DNA from: Vitrella brassicaformis CCMP3155
Lineage: Eukaryota > Protista > Chromerida
Direction: 5' to 3'
Assembly (NCBI GenBank): GCA_001179505.1
Contig: CDMY01000851.1
Location: 1-15,450 of the forward strand
DNA length: 15,450 nucleotides
Under the pieces are notes generated by a model, which saw only the letters and a list, made by a program, of their open reading frames with translations, made no database searches and was not told the DNA's origin. The position numbers and the translations under genes are program-made. Positions within the stretch are counted from its first letter, which is position 1, and each line of letters starts with the position of its first letter. This document shows positions 1,238-15,450 of the stretch, piece by piece.

Positions 1238-4200
1238 CTAAATGAAGCAGTAAAATGGCAGGTTGGCGGGGTCGAGGAGGTTAAACTTGCCGTCCTGGCC
1301 ATATTTGTCGCCAGGCAGAGAGCCCTCGCGCGCGTGGATCTTGGCCTGGATGGCCTCCATGGCTCTAGCGAATTCGCGCACGGAAGGTGCAGCATACTCA
1401 CCGAGGTCGATGGACTCGTACGAGTACATCAGAGAACAGGGACGATGGAGGGGGCGCACATACGCTGAGCCAACAAGTAAGTCTGTACAAGCAGGAAGGA
1501 AGAACACAGGCAGGCACCCTGCTTAAAGCTGCCCCGACCCCCCAAATTCCACATACTGTGTGCATACGCACGTTCCGCGAGGATATCTTCCTTGGTGAGG
1601 TCGTCATCGACTGTTTGGCTGATGTAGTAGGGCTGGAGGTCGACGGATTCGCCAGGCTGGGAGGGCATGGGATGGTGAAGGGTCATCGGCTTGTGCGGAA
1701 GGGCATACATATGCCAACTGAAGGAGGCAGCAACCGACAGGGAAGCAGGATTTGAGACATGCTCATACGTCCCTGTCACAACTCTCTCCCCATCCTCTTT
1801 GTTCGTATACTCCCCCCTCCGTGCGTGCGTGACGTTAATGCGTTGGTTCATACGTGTCGTCCGCATTCATGGTGTGATGGAGCGCCGCCGTGCGGTAGAT
1901 GCAGCTGGTCACCACTCTCACCACCTCATCCAACGACCGGAACGTGCCGGGGAAGCCGGGGATGACGCCGCAAGTCGCCACACCCCACGACTGCAATTCC
2001 CAGTCGGCCACCACGTCACCATCGCTGAAGTAGTAAGCTGACAAGTAGTTCTAGGGAAGGGGAAGGCGGGGGGGGAAGGGGGGGTGCGAGGATGTATCAT
2101 GTCACCGGCTGGTCACGCACTGGCTCGTCAGCTACCTTCACGAAGGTTCTGATGGCGTCGTAGAAGCTGATGAGGTCGTCCTGTCGCTTGAAGCCAGGAA
2201 TCTTGGCGGTGCCGCGCTGCGCCATGCGCACGTAGAGGTCGGCCTCCCAAAAGCTCCCCTCCTCCTCCAATCTCGTCCACGCATCAACAACCCACCTGCC
2301 CGTAGATACAAAGAAGAGTTACACATACAGCATCAGGACGAAGTGCCATGCCTCAGACGAAACTCCCTGTTGTGAGCACAGCCACTTGCACGTAGACGGC
2401 ATGTCCAAATCTATCCCGCGATACATACATGCCATGCCATCCGTCTGCCTATCTGGCGTACTTGTGCGAGCCGACAGAGCCCGGTCCAAACACCATGTCG
2501 ATGCCACCGCCGGGCGCGAAGAGGGCGAGGGAGATTGCTTGGAAATCGTTGAAGAAGAGCTGAGACATATGGTGCTCAAGGAGGACATGCACTGGGTGGG
2601 TGGGGTGTAGCTGACGATGCAATTCGACACGCACAGGGTCGAGTATCTGCAGGCAGACAGTTACAGAGGGATGCACATAAATAGGCCGATGTGAGACCAT
2701 CCCCATGCCAGCACACATGGTATGAGATGTCCATGTACTTCTCTTCTCAGCCCTTCCCGTCCCTACCTACCAGATGGACGTGNNNNNNNNNNNNNNNNNN
2801 NNNNNNNNNNNNNNNNNNNNNNNNNNNNNNNNNNNNNNNNNNNNNNNNNNNNNNNNNNNNNNNNNNNNNNNNNNNNNNNNNNNNNNNNNNNNNNNNNNNN
2901 NNNNNNNNNNNNNNNNNNNNNNNNNNNNNNNNNNNNNNNNNNNNNNNNNNNNNNNNNNNNNNNNNNNNNNNNNNNNNNNNNNNNNNNNNNNNNNNNNNNN
3001 NNNNNNNNNNNNNNNNNNNNNNNNNNNNNNNNNNNNNNNNNNNNNNNNNNNNNNNNNNNNNNNNNNNNNNNNNNNNNNNNNNCGTGCGTGACGCTAATGC
3101 GTTGGTTCATACGTGTCGTCCGCATTCATGGTGTGATGGAGCGCCGCCGTGCGGTAGATGCAGCTGGTCACCACTCTCACCACCTCATCCAACGACCGGA
3201 AGGTGCCGGGGAAGCCGGGGATGACGCCGGAAGTCGCCACACCCCACGACTGCAATTCCCAGTCGGCCACCACGTCACCATCGCTGAAGTAGTAAGCTGA
3301 CAAGTAGTTCTAGGGAAGGGGAAGGCGGGGGGGGAAGGGGGGGTGCGAGGATGTATCATGTCACCGGCTGGTCACGCAGTGGCTCGTCAGCTACCTTCAC
3401 GAAGGTTCTGATGGCGTCGTAGAAGCTGATGAGGTCGTCCTGTCGCTTGAAGCCAGGAATCTTGGCGGTGCCGCGCTGCGCCATGCGCACGTAGAGGTCG
3501 GCATCCCAAAAGCTCCCCTCCTCCTCCAACCTCGTCCACGCATCAACAACCCACCTGCCCGTAGATACAAAAATGCATTTACACATACAGCATCAGGACG
3601 AAGTGCCATGCCTCAGACGAAACTCCCTGTTGTGAGCACAGCCACTTGCACGTAGACGGCATGTCCCACTCTATCCCGCGATACATACATGCCATGCCAT
3701 CCGTCTGCCTATCTGGCGTACTTGTGCGAGCCGACAGAGCCCGGTCCAAACACCATGTCGATGCCACCGCCGGGCGCGAAGAGGGCGAGGGAGATTGCTT
3801 GGAAATCGTTGAAGAAGAGCTGAGACATATGGTGCTCAAGGAGGACATGCACTGGGTGGGTGGGGTGTAGCTGACGATGCAATTCGACACGCACAGGGTC
3901 GAGTATCTGCAGGCAGACAGTTACAGAGGTAGGCACATAAATAGGCCGATGTGAGACCATCCCCATGCCAGCACACATGGTATGAGATGTCCATGTACTT
4001 CTCTTCTCAGCCCTTCCCGTCCCTACCTACCAGATGGACGTGGATGAAGTGGTCGTAGGCTTGGGCGACACCCTCGGCAGCGTCCGCAGCCATCTTGGCG
4101 AGCTGCCACTCGCTCGCCGTGCTGTTGGTCCATTTGACCACGCGGCCGGTGGTGGGATCCTCCATCCCGGCCAGCTGGGGCGTGTAGGTGATACCGTTGT

Positions 4201-5928
4201 CGACCACGTGTATAGCGAAAACGATCAACTTCTCCTCGGCCTTAGGGATGAGGCCTTGGCCGTCACGACCGAGACTTCGTCGGTTGCTGATGACGGATAT
4301 CGGGTGGCCTGTAGCTGTGGTGCCTGATACTCGACAAAAATAGGCGATAGTCGAAGGAGTGTACTGCAGAAAGACACACACACACACACACACTCCACAC
4401 AGAGGGAAACACATACGTACAGCCGTAAGACACCCTCCCTCCCTCTCCTACTACCTTCCATGGCGTAGCTGGCTTGTTGTAGCGGTGCATTTCCGATATG
4501 TCCTGCGCACCCACACCCATGGAAGTCCATATCGACGCCTCTCTGTCCGTCGCTGTACCAAACGCCTGGCTTTCACGTGTCCATACATACATCCACCAAT
4601 ACCCACACCCACCACGATGAAAATGTCCTCGGCCTCCAGGAGCGACGGGAAGTCTCGCCCGCAGGCTTCGAGCGTCACGGAAGGGTTGTCATCAAAGCGG
4701 TTGGTGAAGCGCGGCTCGTTTGGTATCTGTTCGAGGCGAAAACCCTTGACTGATCCAAACAACAGGGACGCAGTAGGTACACGTGTATAGAGTATATCAT
4801 GATTGAGAAGGGTGTTGGAATGCCCTCGGAAAGTGCAGCCAATGGACCTGTGAGGCGGTCCATGGCAAAGGCTTCGTCATTGGTGCCACTACAGACAGGC
4901 AAATAGGGAGGGAGGGGGATGTCCCGTTCGATCCCACTTATCTGTGCCCTTCCCTCCCTGCCTGTAGGATGAGTAGGGACGGTCAAGCAGTCCAATCTTC
5001 TGAATGCTTTTGCTGTTCTCGAGCTCGCGGTACACCTCTTTGAAAAACTCCTCCCCGCGGGAAGGGGAGTCACGCAGCAGTCGCTTTAGCAGCTCAATGG
5101 CAAGATTCTTGCGTCTGTAGCTGTTCTTTTTCGTCATCGGCAGGGCGAAGAGGGCCGCGTCCTTCAGCAGAACTGTGCGACGTGCAGGACATACAACCAA
5201 GCATCGCTTACTACTCCTCTCTCTGACGAATGGCTTTGTCTGTCGACTCCCTGACGTACGTGTTTGGTATCGTGTGCAATCGTCCTCGCACATTAACGGG
5301 CTCAGCCTGCTGCTGTTAAACTCTTTCAACGGCGGGAGGGGACGAGGCATGGGACCTGCATGAGCGCACACAGGTGACGCCGACCGACACATGTAGGGTC
5401 AAAGAAGGCAAGTGAGGAGGCAACCCCGTTGCGTGCATTGTTGGATCAGTGGATGTCGTTAAGCGTGTGCAGGACATACAACCAAGCATCGCTTACTACT
5501 CCTCTCTCTGACGAATGGCTTTGTCTGTCGACTCCCTGACGTACGTGTTTGGTATCGTGTGCAATCGTCCTCGCACATTAACGGGCTCAGCCTGCTGCTG
5601 TTAAACTCTTTCAACGGCGGGAGGGGACGAGGCATGGGACCTGCATGAGCGCACACAGGTGACGCCGACCGACACATGTAGGGTCAAAGAAGGCAAGTGA
5701 GGAGGCAACCCCGTTGCGTGCATTGTTGGATCAGTGGATGTCGTTAAGCGTGATGCCTACCTGGCGGGAAGTCCTGATGAAACAAAACAGAGATAGCTTG
5801 CCATCGGGCGACGAGAGGTGAGCGCGTGCATGCACCCCTCCATCTCCTCCAATCCCTCCCTGCCTATCTGCCTGTCTTACCACGCCCGTGAAGCCGCCGT
5901 CATTGCGGAACCTGGATCCGATATAGAG
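1238..5928 (-). CDS. LOX: Lipoxygenase (non-heme metal dioxygenase), multi-exon, 5' end unresolved
   Basis: Hand-spliced GT-AG exons (minus strand): 5928-5881, 5773-5761, [5640-5545 duplicate], 5355-5260, 5172-4938 (3' border uncertain), 4888-4848, 4749-4613, 4565-4455, 4363-4031, 3906-3722, 3554-3395, 3309-3113, then 1717-1518, 1482-1238. The equivalent duplicate exons are 2646-2462, 2295-2136 and 2050-1854. All phases are compatible, giving ~666 aa with one copy of each exon. LOX motifs: DEAFAMDRLTV; EWQLAKMAADAAEGVAQAYDHFIHVHL|ILDPVRVELHRQLHPTHPVHVLLEHH; LFAPGGGID; YVRMAQRG; FYDAIRTFVK|NYLSAYYFSDGDVVADWELQSW; IYRTAALHHTMN; C-terminus FNLLDPANLPFYCFI-stop (terminal Ile ligand). No ATG was identified upstream. 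Confidence 0.9.
1824..4042 (+). repeat. ~960-bp near-identical direct duplication (1824-2782 vs 3083-4042) flanking a 300-N gap
   Basis: The offset is 1259/1260 throughout. There are about a dozen differences, mostly intronic. The copies abut the gap on both sides. Confidence 0.95.
2783..3082. other. Assembly gap (exactly 300 N)
   Basis: The N run has the same length as the second gap, so it is probably a placeholder. Confidence 0.99.
5182..5751 (+). repeat. 285-bp perfect tandem duplication (5182-5466, 5467-5751) containing a LOX exon
   Basis: The two units read as identical by eye. Each contains a 96-nt phase-1/phase-1 exon (GPMPRPLPPLKEFNSSRLSPLMCEDDCTRYQT) with CAG acceptor and GTACGT donor. 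Confidence 0.95.
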
Positions 5929-7662: not shown

Positions 7663-8700
7663 ATGGCGCAGCCCATCTTTGCATTCGACCCCAAGACCGT
7701 CATCCGTACCTTTAATGGAGACAAGGACGACTGGCGTGAGTGGGAATTTACCCTCAGAGCCTTCCTCCTGGCCAAGGAGATGCCCACAGAGCGTTGATGC
7801 CTGAGAAGGAAGAAGACATTCCTCAGTTACCTGACCCGAATGATGATGGAGACCGTGGCGAGCAGCGAACGAAGGAGAGGAGTGTGTTACGACAGCTCTT
7901 CGGCTTCCTCGTCCTGCACACAGAAGGCAAGGTAAAACGGACCATCCAGTAGTCATTCGACAAGTATGGCGAGAATGGTGCACGAGCCTATTGGGAGTTG
8001 CGCAAGCGGTGCGTACCTGAGCGAGTCGTCTGTCGACATGAGGTCCTCCGCAACTTCTTCCAGTACCAGATGGAGAAGGACGATACCGACGACGCTCTCA
8101 CCGACTTCAACTTCCTGGCGAAGCAGTTGAGCGACATGGGAGAGAAACCAACACCGACAACACCAAGATAGCCGTCATGGTGAATGCCCTACCTCCTCGA
8201 TTTGAGCGTTTCAAAAGCTCGCTGGACTACCGCTTCAACGACCTCACATGGGAGCAATTCGAGGAAGCCCTCCGCAATGCCAACGACCGCATGCAGCATG
8301 CGAGAAGGATGAGCCAGCAGCGTGACCGCTTTCGACAGAAGGGCAACCAGAACGGACGCCAACATGGTCAGCCACACAATGGCAATCGACCTGACACATA
8401 TCAGGGAGGCAACAGGAACAACGAACGGCCTTACCGAGACAATCGTGACAGCCGCTACGAATGGCGACGCCAACCAAACGGCAACCCCACGGCAACAACA
8501 ACAGAAGGAACGGCAATCAGTGGAACTCATCAGGGGCGCCTTTCCGCACCTACCCGAGTGGCAATGGAGGACATCAAGGGGGCAACGGTGGACGCCAGCA
8601 GCAGCCCATCGTTCGTCACGACAAGAACGGAGATGTCATCATGAATGCGACGCGCACGAACGGCACGAGTAGCCGCAATCGGCGTGTCCACACGAATCAA
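7663..8700 (+). pseudogene. gag: Copia Gag, frameshifted
   Basis: ATG at 7663: MAQPIFAFDPKTVIRTFNGDKDDWREWEFTLRAFLLAKEM. Frameshift near 7790, in-frame TAG at 7950-7952, then ARAYWELRK...LAKQLSDMGE. Frameshift near 8160, then KIAVMVNALPPRFERFKSSL, followed by an N/Q/G/R-rich tail with another frameshift near 8485. Confidence 0.85.
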
Positions 8701-9198
8701 CTCGACGGGTGTGATCACATCAACGACACCTGCGAGCAGATAACAACCGACCTGGAAATGGTGGGGACCGTCACGGCCGTTGAGTGCGAGGAAGAGGTGG
8801 TCAACGTCAGCGGTGTGTCTGTGAGACCTACCTCCATGATGATCGATTCAGGAGCCGGCAAGACATGCTGCCACCAGCAGTTTCTCTTCGACGAAATCAA
8901 ACCACTTGACCGACACATCAAGATCGTCATGGCCGATGGCACGTCCGTACCGGCCAGAGGAGTCGGCCGCATCAAGTACACCTGTGAAGAGGTCAACAAC
9001 GGCAAGAAGACCGTGTGTGTGGATGGTGTGCTGTATGTGCCTGATCTGAAGTTCAACCTCCTCTCCGTCGCTCACCTGGTGGATCAATACTGCATCGAGT
9101 TTCTTATTGGCCCCGGCGGAGCCCACATGACCGCAACAAGGAGAGGAGACCGCTACCCGCTGGTCAGACGTGGTCGTTTCTGGTACCTGGACATGTAG
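8461..9198 (+). pseudogene. pol: Copia aspartic protease region of Pol
   Basis: MIDSGAGKTCC (D-S-G catalytic motif), IVMADGTSVPARGVGRI and VLYVPDLKFNLLSV are all present. It ends in a single TAG (9196-9198) that is in frame with the integrase ORF. Confidence 0.9.
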
Positions 9199-10620
9199 AG
9201 GAATGCCAACGACTGCCCCGTCTACTCACAGCCACGTGCCCTGCCGGCAGCAGAGTACACGACAGGCACAGCAACAGAAAGAATCATCGACTCGAGTGGT
9301 GATGATGGCGCGTTTCCCTGTTCACCTGCTGATGAAGGTCACAAGCAAACAGGAGCAATGATGGCCGAGGTCATCAGTGAGGAACTTGCCCATAAGCACT
9401 TCCTCCACTACCACGACGCAGCCGTCGACCGACTTTCTGAGGTCTGTCGCAACGCACCTGTGGTCAAGAAAGGCAAGAAGAATGAGAGAGAGCAGCGCAA
9501 GTGCGCAGTGTGTGTCCAAGCCAAGATGAAGATTCGTCCGTATCTGAACAATGCATTCCGGCATTCGTCACCTGGTGATCTGGTGCACGTCGACCTGGCG
9601 CAGATCAAGCAACTCAGCGAGAGAGGATTCAAGTACCTGATGGTCATGGTGGACGACCACAGCCGTTATGTGCAGGCCTACTTTCTCAAAAAGAAGTCCA
9701 TCGCACCGAAGGCATTTATGCACTACTGCACGGCCATCCGCATGCCCAAGGCAGTGAGGACCGACGGAGGGGCCGAGCTCATCGCCGGCACATGGAAGGC
9801 ATTCTGCGAGCAGCACCAGATACGCCAAGAACAAAGCCTACCGCACCATCAGTCACAAAACGGCGTGGCAGAACGAACGATTGGTGCGATTTGTCAGCTG
9901 ACCCGTGCAGCACTCTTTCAATCCGGCCTTCCCTCATTTTATTGGTGTTTTGCTGCGAAGACCGCCACCTACATCAAGAATCGAATGCCAACCAAGAGAA
10001 ATCCATCAGAGAAGACGCCATTTGAGCTTTTCTGGGGTTACCCACTATGCATCAGGCATATCCGCACATTCGGCGCAAGAGCCTATGTGCGTCAGCGCAA
10101 GGACCAGAGGGGCAAGCTGGATCCACGGGCGAAGTTGGGTATCCTCGTCGGCTTCGACCCCAACACGAAGGATGGTTATGTGATGTGGTTCCCTGATGAT
10201 CGTCAGTTCGTCATCTCACGAGACGTCGAAGTGGACGAGCACGTGTTTCTTGCAAAGGAGAAGCAACCAAGGGGACCACTAGGGATTGATGTGGTGTACC
10301 CCCAGACGCCCGTCTCACCTGACGAGCAGACCGACCACCATCAAGACCACCATCGTGCCCAGCAACCCGAAGATGATCGACAGCATCAAGAAGATGAGTG
10401 TGTCGACCAACACAGCCAAGATCAAGAGCCTGACAGCTCTGCATTGCGCGAAGGACCGCCAGCAGCACCACCAGTACCGCCGGCCGCTCAAGATGCTCCA
10501 GATGCAGAAGAAGCCGTCGCTGATACCGATGGAGGTGCCGCTGACAACTATCGAGTCATTCGAGAGGAAATGGGGATAGATGACGACAATGCCGAGCACC
10601 GAAGATCAGGCCGAAACCTG
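9199..10620 (+). CDS. Copia integrase (GAG-pre-integrase zinc-binding region, rve DDE core, SH3-like C-terminal region)
   Basis: The frame is open from 9199. Motifs: HKHFLH..CAVC, VHVD, VDDHSRY, RTDGGAEL, QNGVAERTI, FGARAYV, GKLDPRA, GYVMW and SRDVEVDE. The supplied ORF 9358-10704 runs past the truncation into non-element DNA. Confidence 0.9.
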
Positions 10621-11189
10621 TGTGTTGATAGTGTGTCACTACATTCCCGTCTATATCTGTGTGTGTTCATGTGTACCGAGGTGGGCGAGTATAAGCAGCG
10701 CTAAGTTAGTGACACAGCTTAGTTTCTTCCTCTTCCACATGTATATGTGTCTGTCTAGATAGATAGATACGAAACGAGCAGCACCCACATCATGCATACG
10801 AATTCATACATGCACCCCACCCATCCTAACCAGCCGGCCGCTCGGAGATGCCTTTTCAGTGCGGCTTGATGAGTGGATGGGAAAGCTATATCGTATTGTG
10901 CTTGTTTGCATGGCGATCGATCGACCGACAAACAACCAATACGACAGCGGCGTTTTCTTTCCTCCTTTTTCATTGATTAGCTTTTTGTGGATCGAGGCAT
11001 AGAGAGATGTTCATATCAGAGAAATGGCGGGCGAGGGGCGAAGATGGCCAAGGTGGATATAGAGAGGAATAATTCATTTGCTCACAGCAGTACGAATAGG
11101 AAGGCGGCTTTGTGTCAGTACTGTGTGGGTGCTTGCTGGAGATATACGTGTGAGGGCTGCATGACGGGTTGTGAGTCGATATGAATAGG

Positions 11190-11506
11190 CCTGATGCATG
11201 CATCCTGATGTGAGTATATACACACCTGCGCACAGAGACATTGGTCATATACACACACTCCAAGTCGACACGTGCATGCGCAGGGCTGCGCATACAGACA
11301 TTCATCATATATATACACACACACACACACACACTCCAAGTCCACACGTGCATGCGCAGATGTGCGCATAGAGACATTCATAATGTATACGCACTTGGAG
11401 ACATTCACCATATACACGCACTCCAAGTCCACAAGTGCATGCGCAGGTGTGCGCATATAGACATTTATTATAAAAACTCACTCCAAGTCCACAATGCACG
11501 CGCAGG
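11190..11506 (+). repeat. Degenerate minisatellite, ~60-87-bp unit
   Basis: The anchor cactccaagtc(c/g)aca..tgca(t/c)gcgcag occurs at 11256, 11332, 11419 and 11479, with variable CA/TA spacers. Confidence 0.85.
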
Positions 11507-12029
11507 TGTTGTATATACAGTGAACTGTACCTTGAACCTTGGTCCTTAACAGTCCCAGGGTTTCAAGGATACGTTTCCCTGCGGGGTGAAGGGCTAGGGA
11601 GGTCCGCCGACACGGAATGCAGGAATAAGACTTTTTGGTGTGTTTCTGGGATGCTCTTTATGTGTCATGACCGAATTGACAAATTGCAGTCGATGTGCAC
11701 ACAGTTGATTGAAGCTTAACGAACTGCCATCCATCCATTCATCGTCCATCGTGCATTGCATGCAGTGACACAAACGTCAATACACATAGACAGTGGGCTG
11801 CAAGGAGAAAAAATCCTCAGCCCAATCAGGCTATTTGCCGGCAGCAGTCCGCCGCCGCTGTCCAGCCCCATTTCGACGGCGCGCCCTGGGTCCGTCCGCT
11901 CGGGCCGGATCGGTTGGGACCACCCCGGTTCCCAAACGCCAGGCCCTTTTGGGTCGTCGTCCCAGGACGCAGCGTGTCCCGCTCCCTGCCAGCACAAGGA
12001 CGTGTCCGGCCAGCTGGGTGGGCGCCCGT

Positions 12030-12422
12030 TCACTCCGCAACGTTGCGCGGGCCCGCCACAACGATCCGATAGCCCTCCGGGCCCTCGAGCCAGATCTCGT
12101 GCTGCCGACCGTTGGGATTGTAGAGCGGCCCGTCCAGGACCTTTGCGCTCGCTTTCTCCACCCGAGCCACGAGCCCATCGAAGTCGTCGGTCGAGAACCA
12201 GAGAAGCACACCATTGCCGCGGGACGGATTCGACTCGTCGCCGAGGTGGGGATGCTCGTGGGTGTCCCAAGCGTGCAACTGGACGACCAGCGCTTCACCG
12301 TCCATGAGCATCTCGTATTCCTGACCTCCATGGCCGGAGCAAAGGCCGAGGACCTCCTGGAACCACTTCGAGCAGGCTTCGACGTCACGAACGACGATCA
12401 TCGGCTGGGGTCGCATCATCAC
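12030..12422 (-). CDS. VOC/glyoxalase-bleomycin-resistance superfamily protein, bacterial type, intronless (~130 aa)
   Basis: MRPQPMIVVRDVEACSKWFQEVLG...LVVQLHAW...GNGVLLWFSTDDFDGLVARVEKASAKVLDGPLYNPNGRQHEIWLEGPEGYRIVVAGP has the paired beta-alpha-beta-beta-beta VOC pattern. GC is high (40/60 in line 12241). Likely start is GTG 12422 or ATG 12419. Confidence 0.88.
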   Translation of the reverse strand: MMMRPQPMIVVRDVEACSKWFQEVLGLCSGHGGQEYEMLMDGEALVVQLHAWDTHEHPHLGDESNPSRGNGVLLWFSTDDFDGLVARVEKASAKVLDGPLYNPNGRQHEIWLEGPEGYRIVVAGPRNVAE

Positions 12423-12429
12423 TCTGGTC

Positions 12430-12436
12430 CCTCCTC
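12430..12436 (-). promoter_or_regulatory. Shine-Dalgarno sequence GAGGAGG
   Basis: It lies 7 nt upstream of the GTG at 12422 and 10 nt upstream of the ATG at 12419. Confidence 0.75.
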
Positions 12437-12530
12437 GTGCCGACAAGCGTGGCAGCGTCAGTCTGTTGTATACACAGCGAAACGCATCCTTGAAACCCTG
12501 GGACTGTTAAGGTCCCAGGGTTTCACTTAA

Positions 12531-12878
12531 CAGTCCCAGNNNNNNNNNNNNNNNNNNNNNNNNNNNNNNNNNNNNNNNNNNNNNNNNNNNNNNNNNNNNN
12601 NNNNNNNNNNNNNNNNNNNNNNNNNNNNNNNNNNNNNNNNNNNNNNNNNNNNNNNNNNNNNNNNNNNNNNNNNNNNNNNNNNNNNNNNNNNNNNNNNNNN
12701 NNNNNNNNNNNNNNNNNNNNNNNNNNNNNNNNNNNNNNNNNNNNNNNNNNNNNNNNNNNNNNNNNNNNNNNNNNNNNNNNNNNNNNNNNNNNNNNNNNNN
12801 NNNNNNNNNNNNNNNNNNNNNNNNNNNNNNNNNNNNNNNGCAGGGTTTCAAGGATGCGTTTCGCTGCGGGGTGAAGGG
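12531..12878 (+). mobile_element. Second left end of the same TIR family, split by the 300-N gap
   Basis: TTAA (12527-12530) is followed by CAGTCCCAG, then the gap, then CAGGGTTTCAAGGATGCGTTTCGCTGCGGGGTGAAGGG. The end shares the left-specific tail CGGGGTGAAGGG with 11582-11593. Confidence 0.75.
12540..12839. other. Assembly gap (exactly 300 N)
   Basis: The sequences on either side join into one TIR, so the true gap may be near zero. Confidence 0.95.
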
Positions 12879-13049
12879 TTTTGTTAGGGTGTGTTGACCG
12901 TGAAATGGTGCACATTTTGACGGACAATAATTGAATTTCAAAGTTAGTCTGCCCTCCCTCCCACTATGCACATCCCCTCCCGCTAAACATCTGTGCATCA
13001 CGCATCAACCATCTGTCCCGCCCGACTTCCCCTCCCTCCCTCCTGCTAT

Positions 13050-13370
13050 CTACACACCATTCACAAAAGGGTTGAACTCCTTCGTCTGGACGGATTTGTG
13101 TTCTTTGGTGATCTCATCCGTCTGCACTTCTTTGCTGATCTTGATATCGGGACCGAAGATAGATGCACATTTGAATGCGTTTGATGAGAAGAAATCTTGC
13201 GTCGGTGTCTTCGGCTGCTGCTTCGGCTTCTCATAGTTCAACCTCGTCCTCTTCTTTTTCTCCTCGTCCTCAAACTCTTCCTTTTTGTAACCGAAAGGAT
13301 TGGCGTGTGTATCCATGTATCCCTTGCCATCATAGCGTTTGACGCGTTTCATAGGGTCTTCTCCTGACAT
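13050..13370 (-). CDS. Hypothetical Lys/Glu-rich protein, divergent from polB
   Basis: It has a genuine ATG start and 106 codons with protein-like composition (MSGEDPMKRVKRYDGKGYMDTHANPFGYKKEEFEDEEKKKR...). No family was recognised, and it may be spliced at its 3' end. Confidence 0.4.
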   Translation of the reverse strand: MSGEDPMKRVKRYDGKGYMDTHANPFGYKKEEFEDEEKKKRTRLNYEKPKQQPKTPTQDFFSSNAFKCASIFGPDIKISKEVQTDEITKEHKSVQTKEFNPFVNGV

Positions 13371-13895
13371 GGACGCCGGAACAACGACGAAAAGGCCGAT
13401 GTGTATCCGCTTTGGCTCGGATAGATTAGTTTCACGAATGGATTAAGTTTCACGTACATATATAAAACTAATTGATATATTATATAAATAGAGGAGGTGA
13501 GAATAAACAAACCTTACAAACTACTACTCTTAAACCACCACCTGAATTGACACCCGAATATACAACATTAAGTCTCATACTTGAAGACGAAAACTTTCAA
13601 TAACTCATTGAAAGTATAATCTTCTTTTACAGTACTATTAGTAATATATGAGAATTAATAATGACTATCAGTATCGGTAATAAAAAATGGTAATGATGAT
13701 TGTTGAAAGTATGGATAATGAAAATTAATTTCAGTATTCAATAATGAGTATTCATCATTATCTTCTTTAGTTAGTCCTATGATATATCAGTATTACCACT
13801 TTCAAGTGCATAGACTTTAATGAAATAATAACCTGATCTATTGAATTTAAAACTTTTATTGTCGTCTTCATGCAGCGTTATGACATCGTAATTGA

Positions 13896-14941
13896 AATAC
13901 AACAGAGATATACGCATGTGGATACATGATTAATGGTCAGTATAATATGGACAAAGGTGAAGGTTGTTTTCAGGTATTTGTCAATAAGATCAAATATTTA
14001 TCTGATAAAATTATAACAGCATATAGCGGTTGCAGATTTGATTTCCATTATTTACTCTCTTATTTGATACACGATGGCGTTGAGATAAAAAAACTTATTG
14101 TTAACAGCGGAAGAATTATGGGGTTTGAGTTTGGTAATAATAACAAAGTATTTGATATTAATCTATTTCTTAACACTTCTTTGAAAAAAGCATGTGAGGA
14201 TTTTAAAATTGGTAAACCAAAAGGGGATTTTGATCATGAAAAGATTAAAATATAGGACGATGTGAAGCAATGGGAGTGCGAATGGAGACCGTATTTAAAA
14301 AGAGATGTTGAAGTATTGATGGAACTAATTGAAACGTTTGGTCGTCTTGTATATGATAAGTATCAATGTAATATTACAAGATTTATGACAGGCAGTCAGA
14401 TGACTTGCGATTTATGGCATTCACAATTAGTATTAGATGATTTTACTTATTTGCCAACAGAAGAGGAGAACAGAGTTAATAGAGAAGCGACAAGAGGTCC
14501 ACATTGTCTGCCTCATATCAAAGACTATGTAAGTAAGTTGTACAAATTAGTTGAAGCATTAAATTGTGTCAAAGAGTTTGATAAAAAACAAAGCATAAAG
14601 AAAAAGATGGATATATTAAGTGAAAGAGTAAATAGAGGAATAGTAGAAATTAACCAAAAATCTTCTCCTTTCCTAGTTATCATTCTATAAGTTATGATAC
14701 ATATATGTCAAGTGAATATAAGAAAATGCAAGAGAACTTTTATAACTACATCCAAGAAAGTAAAGATTATATGATCTGCATTGATGTCAGCAGTCTATAT
14801 CCAACAGCAATGGCAAAATGTGAGTATCCGGTTGGAAAACGCAGAAGATCGCTTAATCAGAAGCAAGAGTTTGAAAAAAGCACAATAGGAATATACTATA
14901 TTGAATACACACCACCAAGTAATATCAGAGTTCCCATATGA
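13896..14941 (+). pseudogene. polB: Family B DNA polymerase, protein-primed/Polinton-virus type, degenerate and 3'-truncated
   Basis: ExoII-like AYSGCRFDFHYLL; LNTSLKKACEDFKIGKPKGDFDH; ExoIII YLKRDV; palm motif A DVSSLYPTAM followed by YPVG. There is an in-frame TAG at 14253-14255 and a stop plus frameshift at 14688-14705. The region is AT-rich (~30% GC by eye), intronless, and cut off at ~14938 before motifs B and C. Confidence 0.88.
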
Positions 14942-15450
14942 TGCGTAGTGGACCCCTCGCATCGATGTTGTATATGTGGATCTGTGTTGCGAGTCCCGTC
15001 TATCCGTCCGACAAGGTGTGTACGAACCGGAAAGAAGAGCAGACAGACTGAAGGACGCATACATGGAATGAATGGATGTGTATGGACCGTCTGCCGCGCA
15101 CGCAACCGACCTGTATGTGGGTGTTCCCGCATCCACGTGACCACCGCCTCCGCATATGTGTGCAGCCGACGGCCGCGTCTACCATATATGTGAGCACAAA
15201 GTGTTTGTCTTGCTCGCGCCATGTGTATTTCGACGGATGTGTTGCGTGTCTGTCGATGGGTGCGTGCGAGTGACTGACTGCCTGTCTGCCTGGATGGATG
15301 GATGGATGTGTGTCTGGATAGATACATGGATGGGAGCCGATGGATGGGCATGGGAAAGAGAGAGATGTGAATGTGTCTTTGTCCACGGAGGAGAAGCGAG
15401 CCCTTACATGACATGAATGATGCTGTCTGTAGCCGTCATGGTGTAGCGTG

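Follow-up and report, generated by a model that had tools for sequence, protein, structure and literature searches.

A TTAA-flanked, transposon-like element with a transcribed bacterial-type gene in Vitrella brassicaformis

Layout of the locus and its repeated ends

The window analysed here, 15,450 nucleotides in length, is one entire scaffold of the alga Vitrella brassicaformis CCMP3155 (contig CDMY01000851.1 of assembly GCA_001179505.1). It carries four copies of a short repeated end, which we name R0, L1, R1 and L2 in their order along the forward strand. L1 and R1 bound the sole complete element, E1 (965 bp, 11546-12510), which holds an intact VOC/glyoxalase-family gene of bacterial type and which we are somewhat inclined to read as a non-autonomous DNA transposon. 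A satellite adjoins the ends on the left, and to their right lie a transcribed open reading frame (ORF) and the relic of a protein-primed DNA polymerase. An earlier note, made from the letters of this stretch alone, had described the locus as a head-to-tail array of TTAA-bounded elements with unrelated cargo; its four ends of one family, in the order R0-TTAA-L1...R1-TTAA-spacer-TTAA-L2 and at the places it gave, were borne out by motif scans, a repeat finder, alignments and shuffles.

The ends were located by direct reading of 11200-13300, exact-motif scans, the repeat finder and alignment of the ends with one another. E1 is bounded by a terminal inverted repeat of 32 bp (36 bp including TTAA). 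Its left end, L1 (11550-11593, forward strand), consists of the repeat itself (11550-11581), which begins CAGTCCCAGGGTTTCA and terminates in CTG, followed by a 12-nt tail specific to left ends, CGGGGTGAAGGG (11582-11593). The right end, R1 (12449-12506, forward strand), recovered by the repeat finder, by alignments and by a 32-mer search, runs from a right-specific tail (12461-12474, with weaker homology inward to ~12449) into the repeat (12475-12506), after which comes TTAA (12507-12510). The two repeats are identical at 30 of 32 positions, and a search for the 32-mer allowing up to 3 mismatches found two copies in the window, L1 and R1, and 0 in 200 shuffles of it.

Beyond R1 follow, in turn, that TTAA, a 16-bp spacer and a second TTAA (12507-12530 altogether). 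The spacer (12511-12526), in which a partial core had been noted, includes the exact 14-bp repeat core GTCCCAGGGTTTCA and is succeeded by the TTAA at 12527-12530; together with R1 it could form a perfect 14-bp hairpin (fold -20.7 kcal/mol, z = -5.4). The second left end, L2 (12531-12878, forward strand), was picked up by motif scans, the repeat finder and alignment, and comprises 9 bases (12531-12539), a 300-N gap (12540-12839) and, from 12841, the repeat with its left tail. Positions 12841-12878 match the repeat plus tail, and 12841-12866 are 100% complementary to R1. A left end does lie within the span previously assigned to L2, most of which is the gap.

The fourth end, R0 (11495-11545, forward strand), was recognised by its alignment to R1, which extends over ~55 nt (11495-11549) and scores 45, as against a mean of 14.6 (sd 3.1, maximum 32) in 2000 shuffles. 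The earlier note had placed a degenerate right end at 11507-11545; the right end stands, and its homology reaches further inward, to 11495. Since R0 differs from R1 by several C/T and G/A changes and three small gaps, it appears to be an older, decayed copy of a right end. The scaffold contains no partner left end for R0 and no right end for L2, and both may be truncated solo ends beside unrelated DNA. Accordingly, what had been taken for three cargo interiors (the satellite, the bacterial gene and the polymerase region) reduces to one, since the satellite lacks a left end and the polymerase region lacks a right end. The bacterial gene is indeed the interior of the double-ended E1, and the suggestion of a family that accumulates foreign genes comes down to this single element.

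As the earlier note had stated, left ends share one tail and right ends another: alignments showed the left tails to be common to L1 and L2 and the right tails to R0 and R1, while the sequence further inward diverges and the interiors are unrelated. TTAA occurs 16 times in the 12.8-kb GC-rich part of the window, and 3 of these occurrences sit exactly at the repeat tips, covering all three junctions. Reading of the sequence also confirmed that one TTAA (11546-11549) serves both R0 and L1, which is expected if TTAA is the target and not a part of the element. On either side of E1, the DNA beyond its TTAAs also forms an inverted repeat, if an imperfect one, since the tip of R0 resembles the reverse complement of the spacer; judged by its sequence, E1 could equally be said to occupy the TTAA at the centre of an older, end-to-end palindrome.

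Such palindromes bring to mind a different mechanism, in which the TTAA-centred palindromes (R0/L1 and R1/spacer/L2) would be the sites of a site-specific recombinase and the segments between them cassettes, forming an integron-like array in a eukaryote. Integron arrays likewise consist of unrelated single-gene units separated by imperfect ~90-bp palindromes, and VOC/glyoxalase-type genes are common among integron cassette genes. At this locus all ends share one orientation, R1 and the readable part of L2 form a perfect palindrome with 36-bp arms, R1 and the spacer form a stable hairpin, the DNA outside the TTAAs of E1 is palindromic too, and the segments are mutually unrelated and partly foreign. 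However, an array of this kind would comprise two sites only, and three units would fall in the same orientation by chance in 1 case out of 4. As in transposon ends, left halves have one conserved tail and right halves another, and the sites are split into symmetrical halves around TTAA. Neither an integron-type integrase nor any other recombinase gene lies in the scaffold, whose host is a eukaryote, and the arms, which begin CAGCGAAAC and end GTTTCGCTG, contain no integron attC core (RYYYAAC/GTTRRRY) in the right order. The earlier note had offered a cassette array as its alternative; orientation and palindromes speak for it, the lack of a recombinase and of a canonical site motif against it, and we regard it as quite unlikely.

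The VOC gene and its place in the algal genome

The gene within E1 (12030-12419, reverse strand) encodes an intact VOC/glyoxalase-family protein of 129 aa (PF00903, E = 4e-7). Its homologues (n=457; best 86% amino acid identity) come from varied bacterial and metagenome contexts, and the protein keeps every invariant column of a 10-sequence alignment. A Shine-Dalgarno-like GGAGG lies 8-11 nt upstream of its GTG/ATG start. At the DNA level similarity to its relatives is 77-79% and restricted to the coding sequence, and comparison with the flanks of 12 homologous loci revealed no remnant of a neighbouring bacterial gene in 11594-12045. The rest of the interior, 11594-12029 (reverse strand), is non-coding and by its GC profile falls into two parts, of ~46% GC (11594-11830) and 65-71% GC (11830-12029).

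Of the reads from Vitrella, 80% were bacterial, and 620 contaminant scaffolds were removed in the source genome project (PMC4501334), so that an element as bacterial-looking as E1 needed a contamination test. We therefore drew on De Bruijn contigs from three DNA runs, namely X1 (an independent marine-sediment sample, which carries its own single-nucleotide polymorphisms, SNPs), X2 and X3, as well as from an RNA run, X9, bearing the same species label as the DNA runs. In X1, X2 and X3, respectively, the depth of E1 was 10.3, 41.6 and 22.4, that of the left flank 4.5, 34.6 and 12.8, and that of the DNA to the right of L2 6.5, 44.1 and 18.7. E1 thus stays within ~2-fold of its flanks across culture and marine sediment, and this tracking indicates that it is not a contaminant. 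One X2 contig (11416-11573) matches the scaffold with 0 differences and runs from the satellite through R0 and TTAA into L1, of which it includes the first 24 bases; an A private to L1, at 11571, is present both in this bridging contig and in the E1 contig. Contigs from X2 and X3 cover E1 from end to end (11544/11579 to 12504).

Searches of sequence collections point the same way. Patterns of 19-26 nt from the repeat and the right tail had 0 matches in 185,579 bacterial and archaeal genomes or in viral contigs, the element ends had no plasmid match, and the repeat core had 0 matches in JGI metagenome contigs. The junction words were found solely in the runs of this species. At proportionate, single-copy depth in three DNA runs, the locus belongs to the algal genome and does not stem from bacterial contamination; the absence of the ends from bacterial, viral and plasmid collections, together with the species-only junction words, rules out an adapter, a vector and a bacterial mobile element. 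An adapter or vector, which the earlier note had named as a possible refutation, is also ruled out by the divergence of R0, which includes indels. The lack of matches in bacterial and archaeal genomes and viral contigs likewise eliminated a bacterial insertion sequence, a miniature inverted-repeat transposable element (MITE) and an integron site as candidates.

A comparison of the left tail with metagenome contigs returned one 25-nt exact match, between positions 1235-1259 of contig L015 and 12855-12879 of the window. A small zinc-ribbon ORF has the match at its coding end; the contig, which is phage-like, has no repeat core, TTAA or other similarity to the locus. Chance is the probable cause, although at odds of roughly 1 in 100 or less. 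Separately, X1 and other marine-sediment metagenomes (2023, 2025) contain the whole locus (10500-15450) at ~4-10x, with SNPs of their own and a 16-nt insertion at 13417, which indicates that a Vitrella-like alga is abundant there.

In the RNA run, contigs in unique sequence were limited to two, 11726-12437 and 13036-13409, both at a depth of ~25, while the polymerase relic and the unique flanks had none. Of the two, the first (depth 24.7) spans the VOC gene and continues into the non-bacterial, 46% GC part of E1, so that the non-coding interior partly represents the 3' region of the VOC transcript. The VOC gene is transcribed by the alga. Its transcript starts ~24 nt inside R1, a position that suggests the R1-L2 palindrome region as a candidate promoter.

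These data also bear on the idea of an assembly or contamination artefact, that is, of a bacterial contig threaded into an algal scaffold via a shared short repeat. The bacterial share of the reads, the Shine-Dalgarno-like motif kept by the VOC gene, the breaking of contigs at every repeat copy and the unbridged gap would all be in keeping with it. Yet E1 follows the depth of its flanks in three DNA runs including the independent sediment sample, a contig bridges satellite, R0 and L1 with the private A, an RNA contig passes from the gene into non-bacterial sequence, and the repeat is absent from the bacterial and archaeal genomes searched. An artefact is, in our judgement, exceedingly improbable.

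In the sediment run X1 the E1 interior reaches ~2x the flank depth, and an X1 contig (11659-12471) follows the window sequence for 8 nt into the right tail and then departs from it. This departure could mark a second genomic context of the VOC segment, e.g., a parental locus.

The right-hand side of the array is less continuous. No contig listed from any run crosses 12540-12839, and those of X2 and X3 stop at 12504 and resume exactly at 12841. Bin arithmetic points to one further contig of single-copy depth over 12492-12539 in X2 and X3, and none in X1 (in X2, 15.2 x 166 minus 13 E1-contig bases = ~41 x 48; the X3 equivalent is ~17.6), which places R1-TTAA-spacer-TTAA and the start of L2 in the reads of two runs. 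The X3 contig starting at 12841 extends 58 letters further left. If the contig ends in the scaffold overlap by 4 nt, L2 would be a full 48-nt left end, the length of L1; in the proposed overlap CAG matches exactly and the fourth position, 12840, mismatches.

The scaffold has another 300-N gap (2783-3082), whose flanks, 1824-2782 (959 bp) and 3083-4042 (960 bp), are identical at 946 of 959 positions. Flanks this similar indicate that 300 N is probably a placeholder length and that probably not both gaps are real. Either two overlapping contigs were left unmerged around 2783-3082, giving a false gap and a false duplication, or the scaffold has a real tandem duplication of 1.26 kb there, and gene models drawn across this stretch, such as the lipoxygenase (1238-4363) of the earlier note, may contain the duplicated block.

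Neighbouring sequence

The satellite that adjoins R0 (~11164-11506) has monomers of ~76-87 bp and was delimited by the repeat finder and by word depth. Its words reach a depth of 1e5 to 2e5 in the DNA runs, compared with ~40 for single-copy DNA, and of 1,300-2,000 in the RNA run, which implies thousands of genomic copies, possibly transcribed. A derivation of the satellite from the element ends was considered and rejected, as the two have no significant similarity. Upstream of it, 8461-10704 holds copia-type pol pieces (Pol_BBD, an rve integrase core and a retroviral SH3-like domain), among them the only rve domain of the scaffold (copia-type pol, 9358-10704); the locus therefore lies in a transposon- and repeat-rich region.

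To the right of L2, an ORF of 106 aa rich in Lys and Glu (13050-13370, reverse strand) is covered by the second RNA contig (13036-13409) at a depth of 25.8, the same as that of the VOC gene. It has no homologues, no Pfam family and no useful atlas match. A single spliced transcript of this ORF and the VOC gene was discarded, because no junction sequence appears at the ends of the RNA contigs and there is no GT donor at 13034-13035.

Further right comes an AT-rich block (13420-14940, forward strand, ~30% GC) containing an internal fragment of a protein-primed family-B DNA polymerase, matched by PF03175 in three pieces. This relic has one in-frame stop and one frameshift and is without the N- and C-terminal parts of its relatives (~1050 aa). 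The relatives are metagenomic, at most 44% identical, and none is from Vitrella, for which reason we abandoned them as a path to sibling elements. The block stops at ~14940, at a 10-25x repeat, and no right end follows.

Several further observations concern this block. The right-tail 9-mer TGTTGTATA has two extra copies in inverted orientation, at 13551-13559 (reverse strand) and 14966-14974 (forward strand), that is, ~130 bp inside the left edge of the block and ~30 bp beyond its right edge; ~0.12 such copies are expected by chance in the window, and nothing else of a right end comes after them. Within the relic (13785-14806) 16 positions of the X2 contigs and 7 of the X3 contigs disagree with the scaffold, and X3 has a 27-nt insertion at 14195, while elsewhere both runs are nearly identical to the scaffold. 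Behind these differences may lie several near-identical copies of the relic, or else errors in the assembly of this AT-rich stretch. At its end (14982-15313) the scaffold is occupied by a dispersed repeat with 10-25x single-copy depth and many variant positions in all DNA runs.

The polymerase raises the question of whether a virus-like, protein-primed element, Polinton-like or otherwise, had these repeats as its termini, with E1 as a mini derivative that kept the termini only. Polintons (Mavericks) have long terminal repeats, a 6-bp target duplication, and genes for a protein-primed polymerase, an rve integrase and a capsid. In favour of such an origin, L2 lies ~1 kb from the polymerase fragment, one of whose relatives adjoins an rve integrase, as in Polintons. 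Against it, all that is present of the polymerase is a broken internal piece within a 30% GC block, which ~540 bp of DNA of 42-55% GC and an unrelated transcribed ORF separate from the 55% GC end. The 32-bp repeat with TTAA differs from the much longer repeats and 6-bp duplications of Polintons, there is no capsid, integrase or ATPase gene in this part, and the polymerase is followed by no right end. We consider this explanation very unlikely.

A neighbourhood so rich in repeats might also have produced the pattern by itself. In a non-mobile local rearrangement, one ancestral inverted-repeat structure would have been duplicated and scrambled by palindrome-driven errors of replication or repair beside the satellite, and the bacterial gene would have arrived by an unrelated transfer. 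The ends were seen solely at this locus in the collections searched, satellite and repeats abound around the locus, which is situated at a scaffold end, and R1 and L2 are identical where readable, possibly owing to a recent duplication or gene conversion. Nevertheless, R0 is far more diverged than R1 and L2, which points to events at different times, and a clean TTAA at each junction with exact 32-bp boundaries would be hard to obtain from random repair. A rearrangement of this sort strikes us as unlikely.

A possible TTAA-targeting transposon family

Taken together, the ends and junctions lead us to favour, by a modest measure, a rare, low-copy, non-autonomous family of TTAA-targeting cut-and-paste DNA transposons in V. 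brassicaformis, of which E1 is the complete member. The earlier proposal of a cargo-capturing TTAA family agrees with the asymmetry between left and right ends, with the TTAA found at each junction and with the foreign gene in E1; what it lacks is more than one complete element and a transposase in the window. We infer from the layout that E1 transposed, that TTAA is its target duplication, that the ends arose in a certain order and that the bacterial gene was captured by the element.

On this transposon reading, E1 would be a non-autonomous element whose interior was replaced by ~620 bp of bacterial-derived DNA, with the VOC gene, and ~240 bp of non-coding DNA of ~46% GC. A transposase supplied in trans would cut the element and paste it into TTAA. 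Each insertion would recreate TTAA beside an end and so offer a target for the next insertion, leading to head-to-tail packing by local hopping. Either the element would have picked up the bacterial segment, or the segment would have come in with it. R0 would then be a right end that is older and has decayed, L2 would belong to a further copy as its left end, and the 16-bp core fragment would be either the remnant of another truncated end or filler from break repair.

In its behaviour E1 appears to resemble a Pack-type non-autonomous transposon, and we leave its superfamily unassigned. The earlier note had likened it to piggyBac and Kolobok. With the piggyBac superfamily it shares TTAA at both ends, short terminal inverted repeats, asymmetric subterminal sequence and the possibility of large foreign cargo. 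PiggyBac termini are of the CCC type, whereas the ends of E1 read TTAA and then CAGTCCC (CAG...CTG). Other differences are the low copy number, the bacterial-type cargo and the absence of a match to DDE_Tnp_1_7 (PF13843) among the window ORFs scanned. A precedent for foreign cargo is Teratorn, a piggyBac-type TTAA transposon that carries a whole herpesvirus (PMC5601938). Kolobok elements and T2-MITEs also target TTAA and have short non-autonomous derivatives, some of them associated with satellite-like repeats (PMC6004289). Kolobok ends begin AG/RR, in contrast to E1, whose first base is C, and no Kolobok transposase was present among the window ORFs scanned. Hence neither affiliation fits the CAG...CTG termini.

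The Pack-TYPE and Pack-MULE elements of plants (PMC8903248) come closer in organization: only ~50 bp at their ends is conserved, the interior is swapped for unrelated genic DNA, and the captured sequence is transcribed. Those elements carry fragments of host genes, while E1 carries a complete, bacterial-derived gene and has no known parental locus or autonomous partner.

Several points weigh against a transposon family. Among the window ORFs scanned there was no transposase or recombinase, and E1 is the one element that is complete. Read depth gives no sign of further copies stacked on the ends: two local contigs fully account for the X2 depth of 42.3 in bin 11496-11661, although copy number estimated from depth sets no firm upper limit, as short shared repeats may go unplaced. 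Since TTAA is palindromic, a target duplication is, with one element, indistinguishable from an extension of the repeat, and the inverted-repeat-like DNA outside the TTAAs of E1 fits insertion into a palindromic site as well as tandem insertion. To these are added the mismatch of the termini with those of Kolobok and piggyBac and the small share of class 2 elements, ~0.1% of the Vitrella genome (supplement to PMC4501334). Contigs break at 11544/11573, a hint of one further copy or allele of left type.

A bolder version of events would make the ends a eukaryotic landing pad, at which a transposase or recombinase recognising the TTAA palindrome repeatedly brings in or exchanges foreign DNA and the palindrome gives promoter activity. 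The locus would then be an analogue of integron cassettes, with an expressed bacterial gene and a virus-derived segment. We hold this to be highly improbable.

Were the locus only a local relic, it would merit a minor annotation note. Its main interest, which we rate as moderate, is an expressed bacterial gene inside transposon-like ends, and is limited by the single locus, the missing transposase and the unbridged gap. Vitrella is the closest free-living relative of the apicomplexan parasites and has very few DNA transposons, and a TTAA-targeting family with unusual termini would enlarge the sparse catalogue of class 2 elements in alveolates. If E1 is mobile, it would represent a concrete case of a bacterial gene that lies within transposon ends and is expressed in a eukaryote, and would thereby illustrate one plausible way for genes acquired horizontally to become fixed, moved and transcribed in protist genomes.

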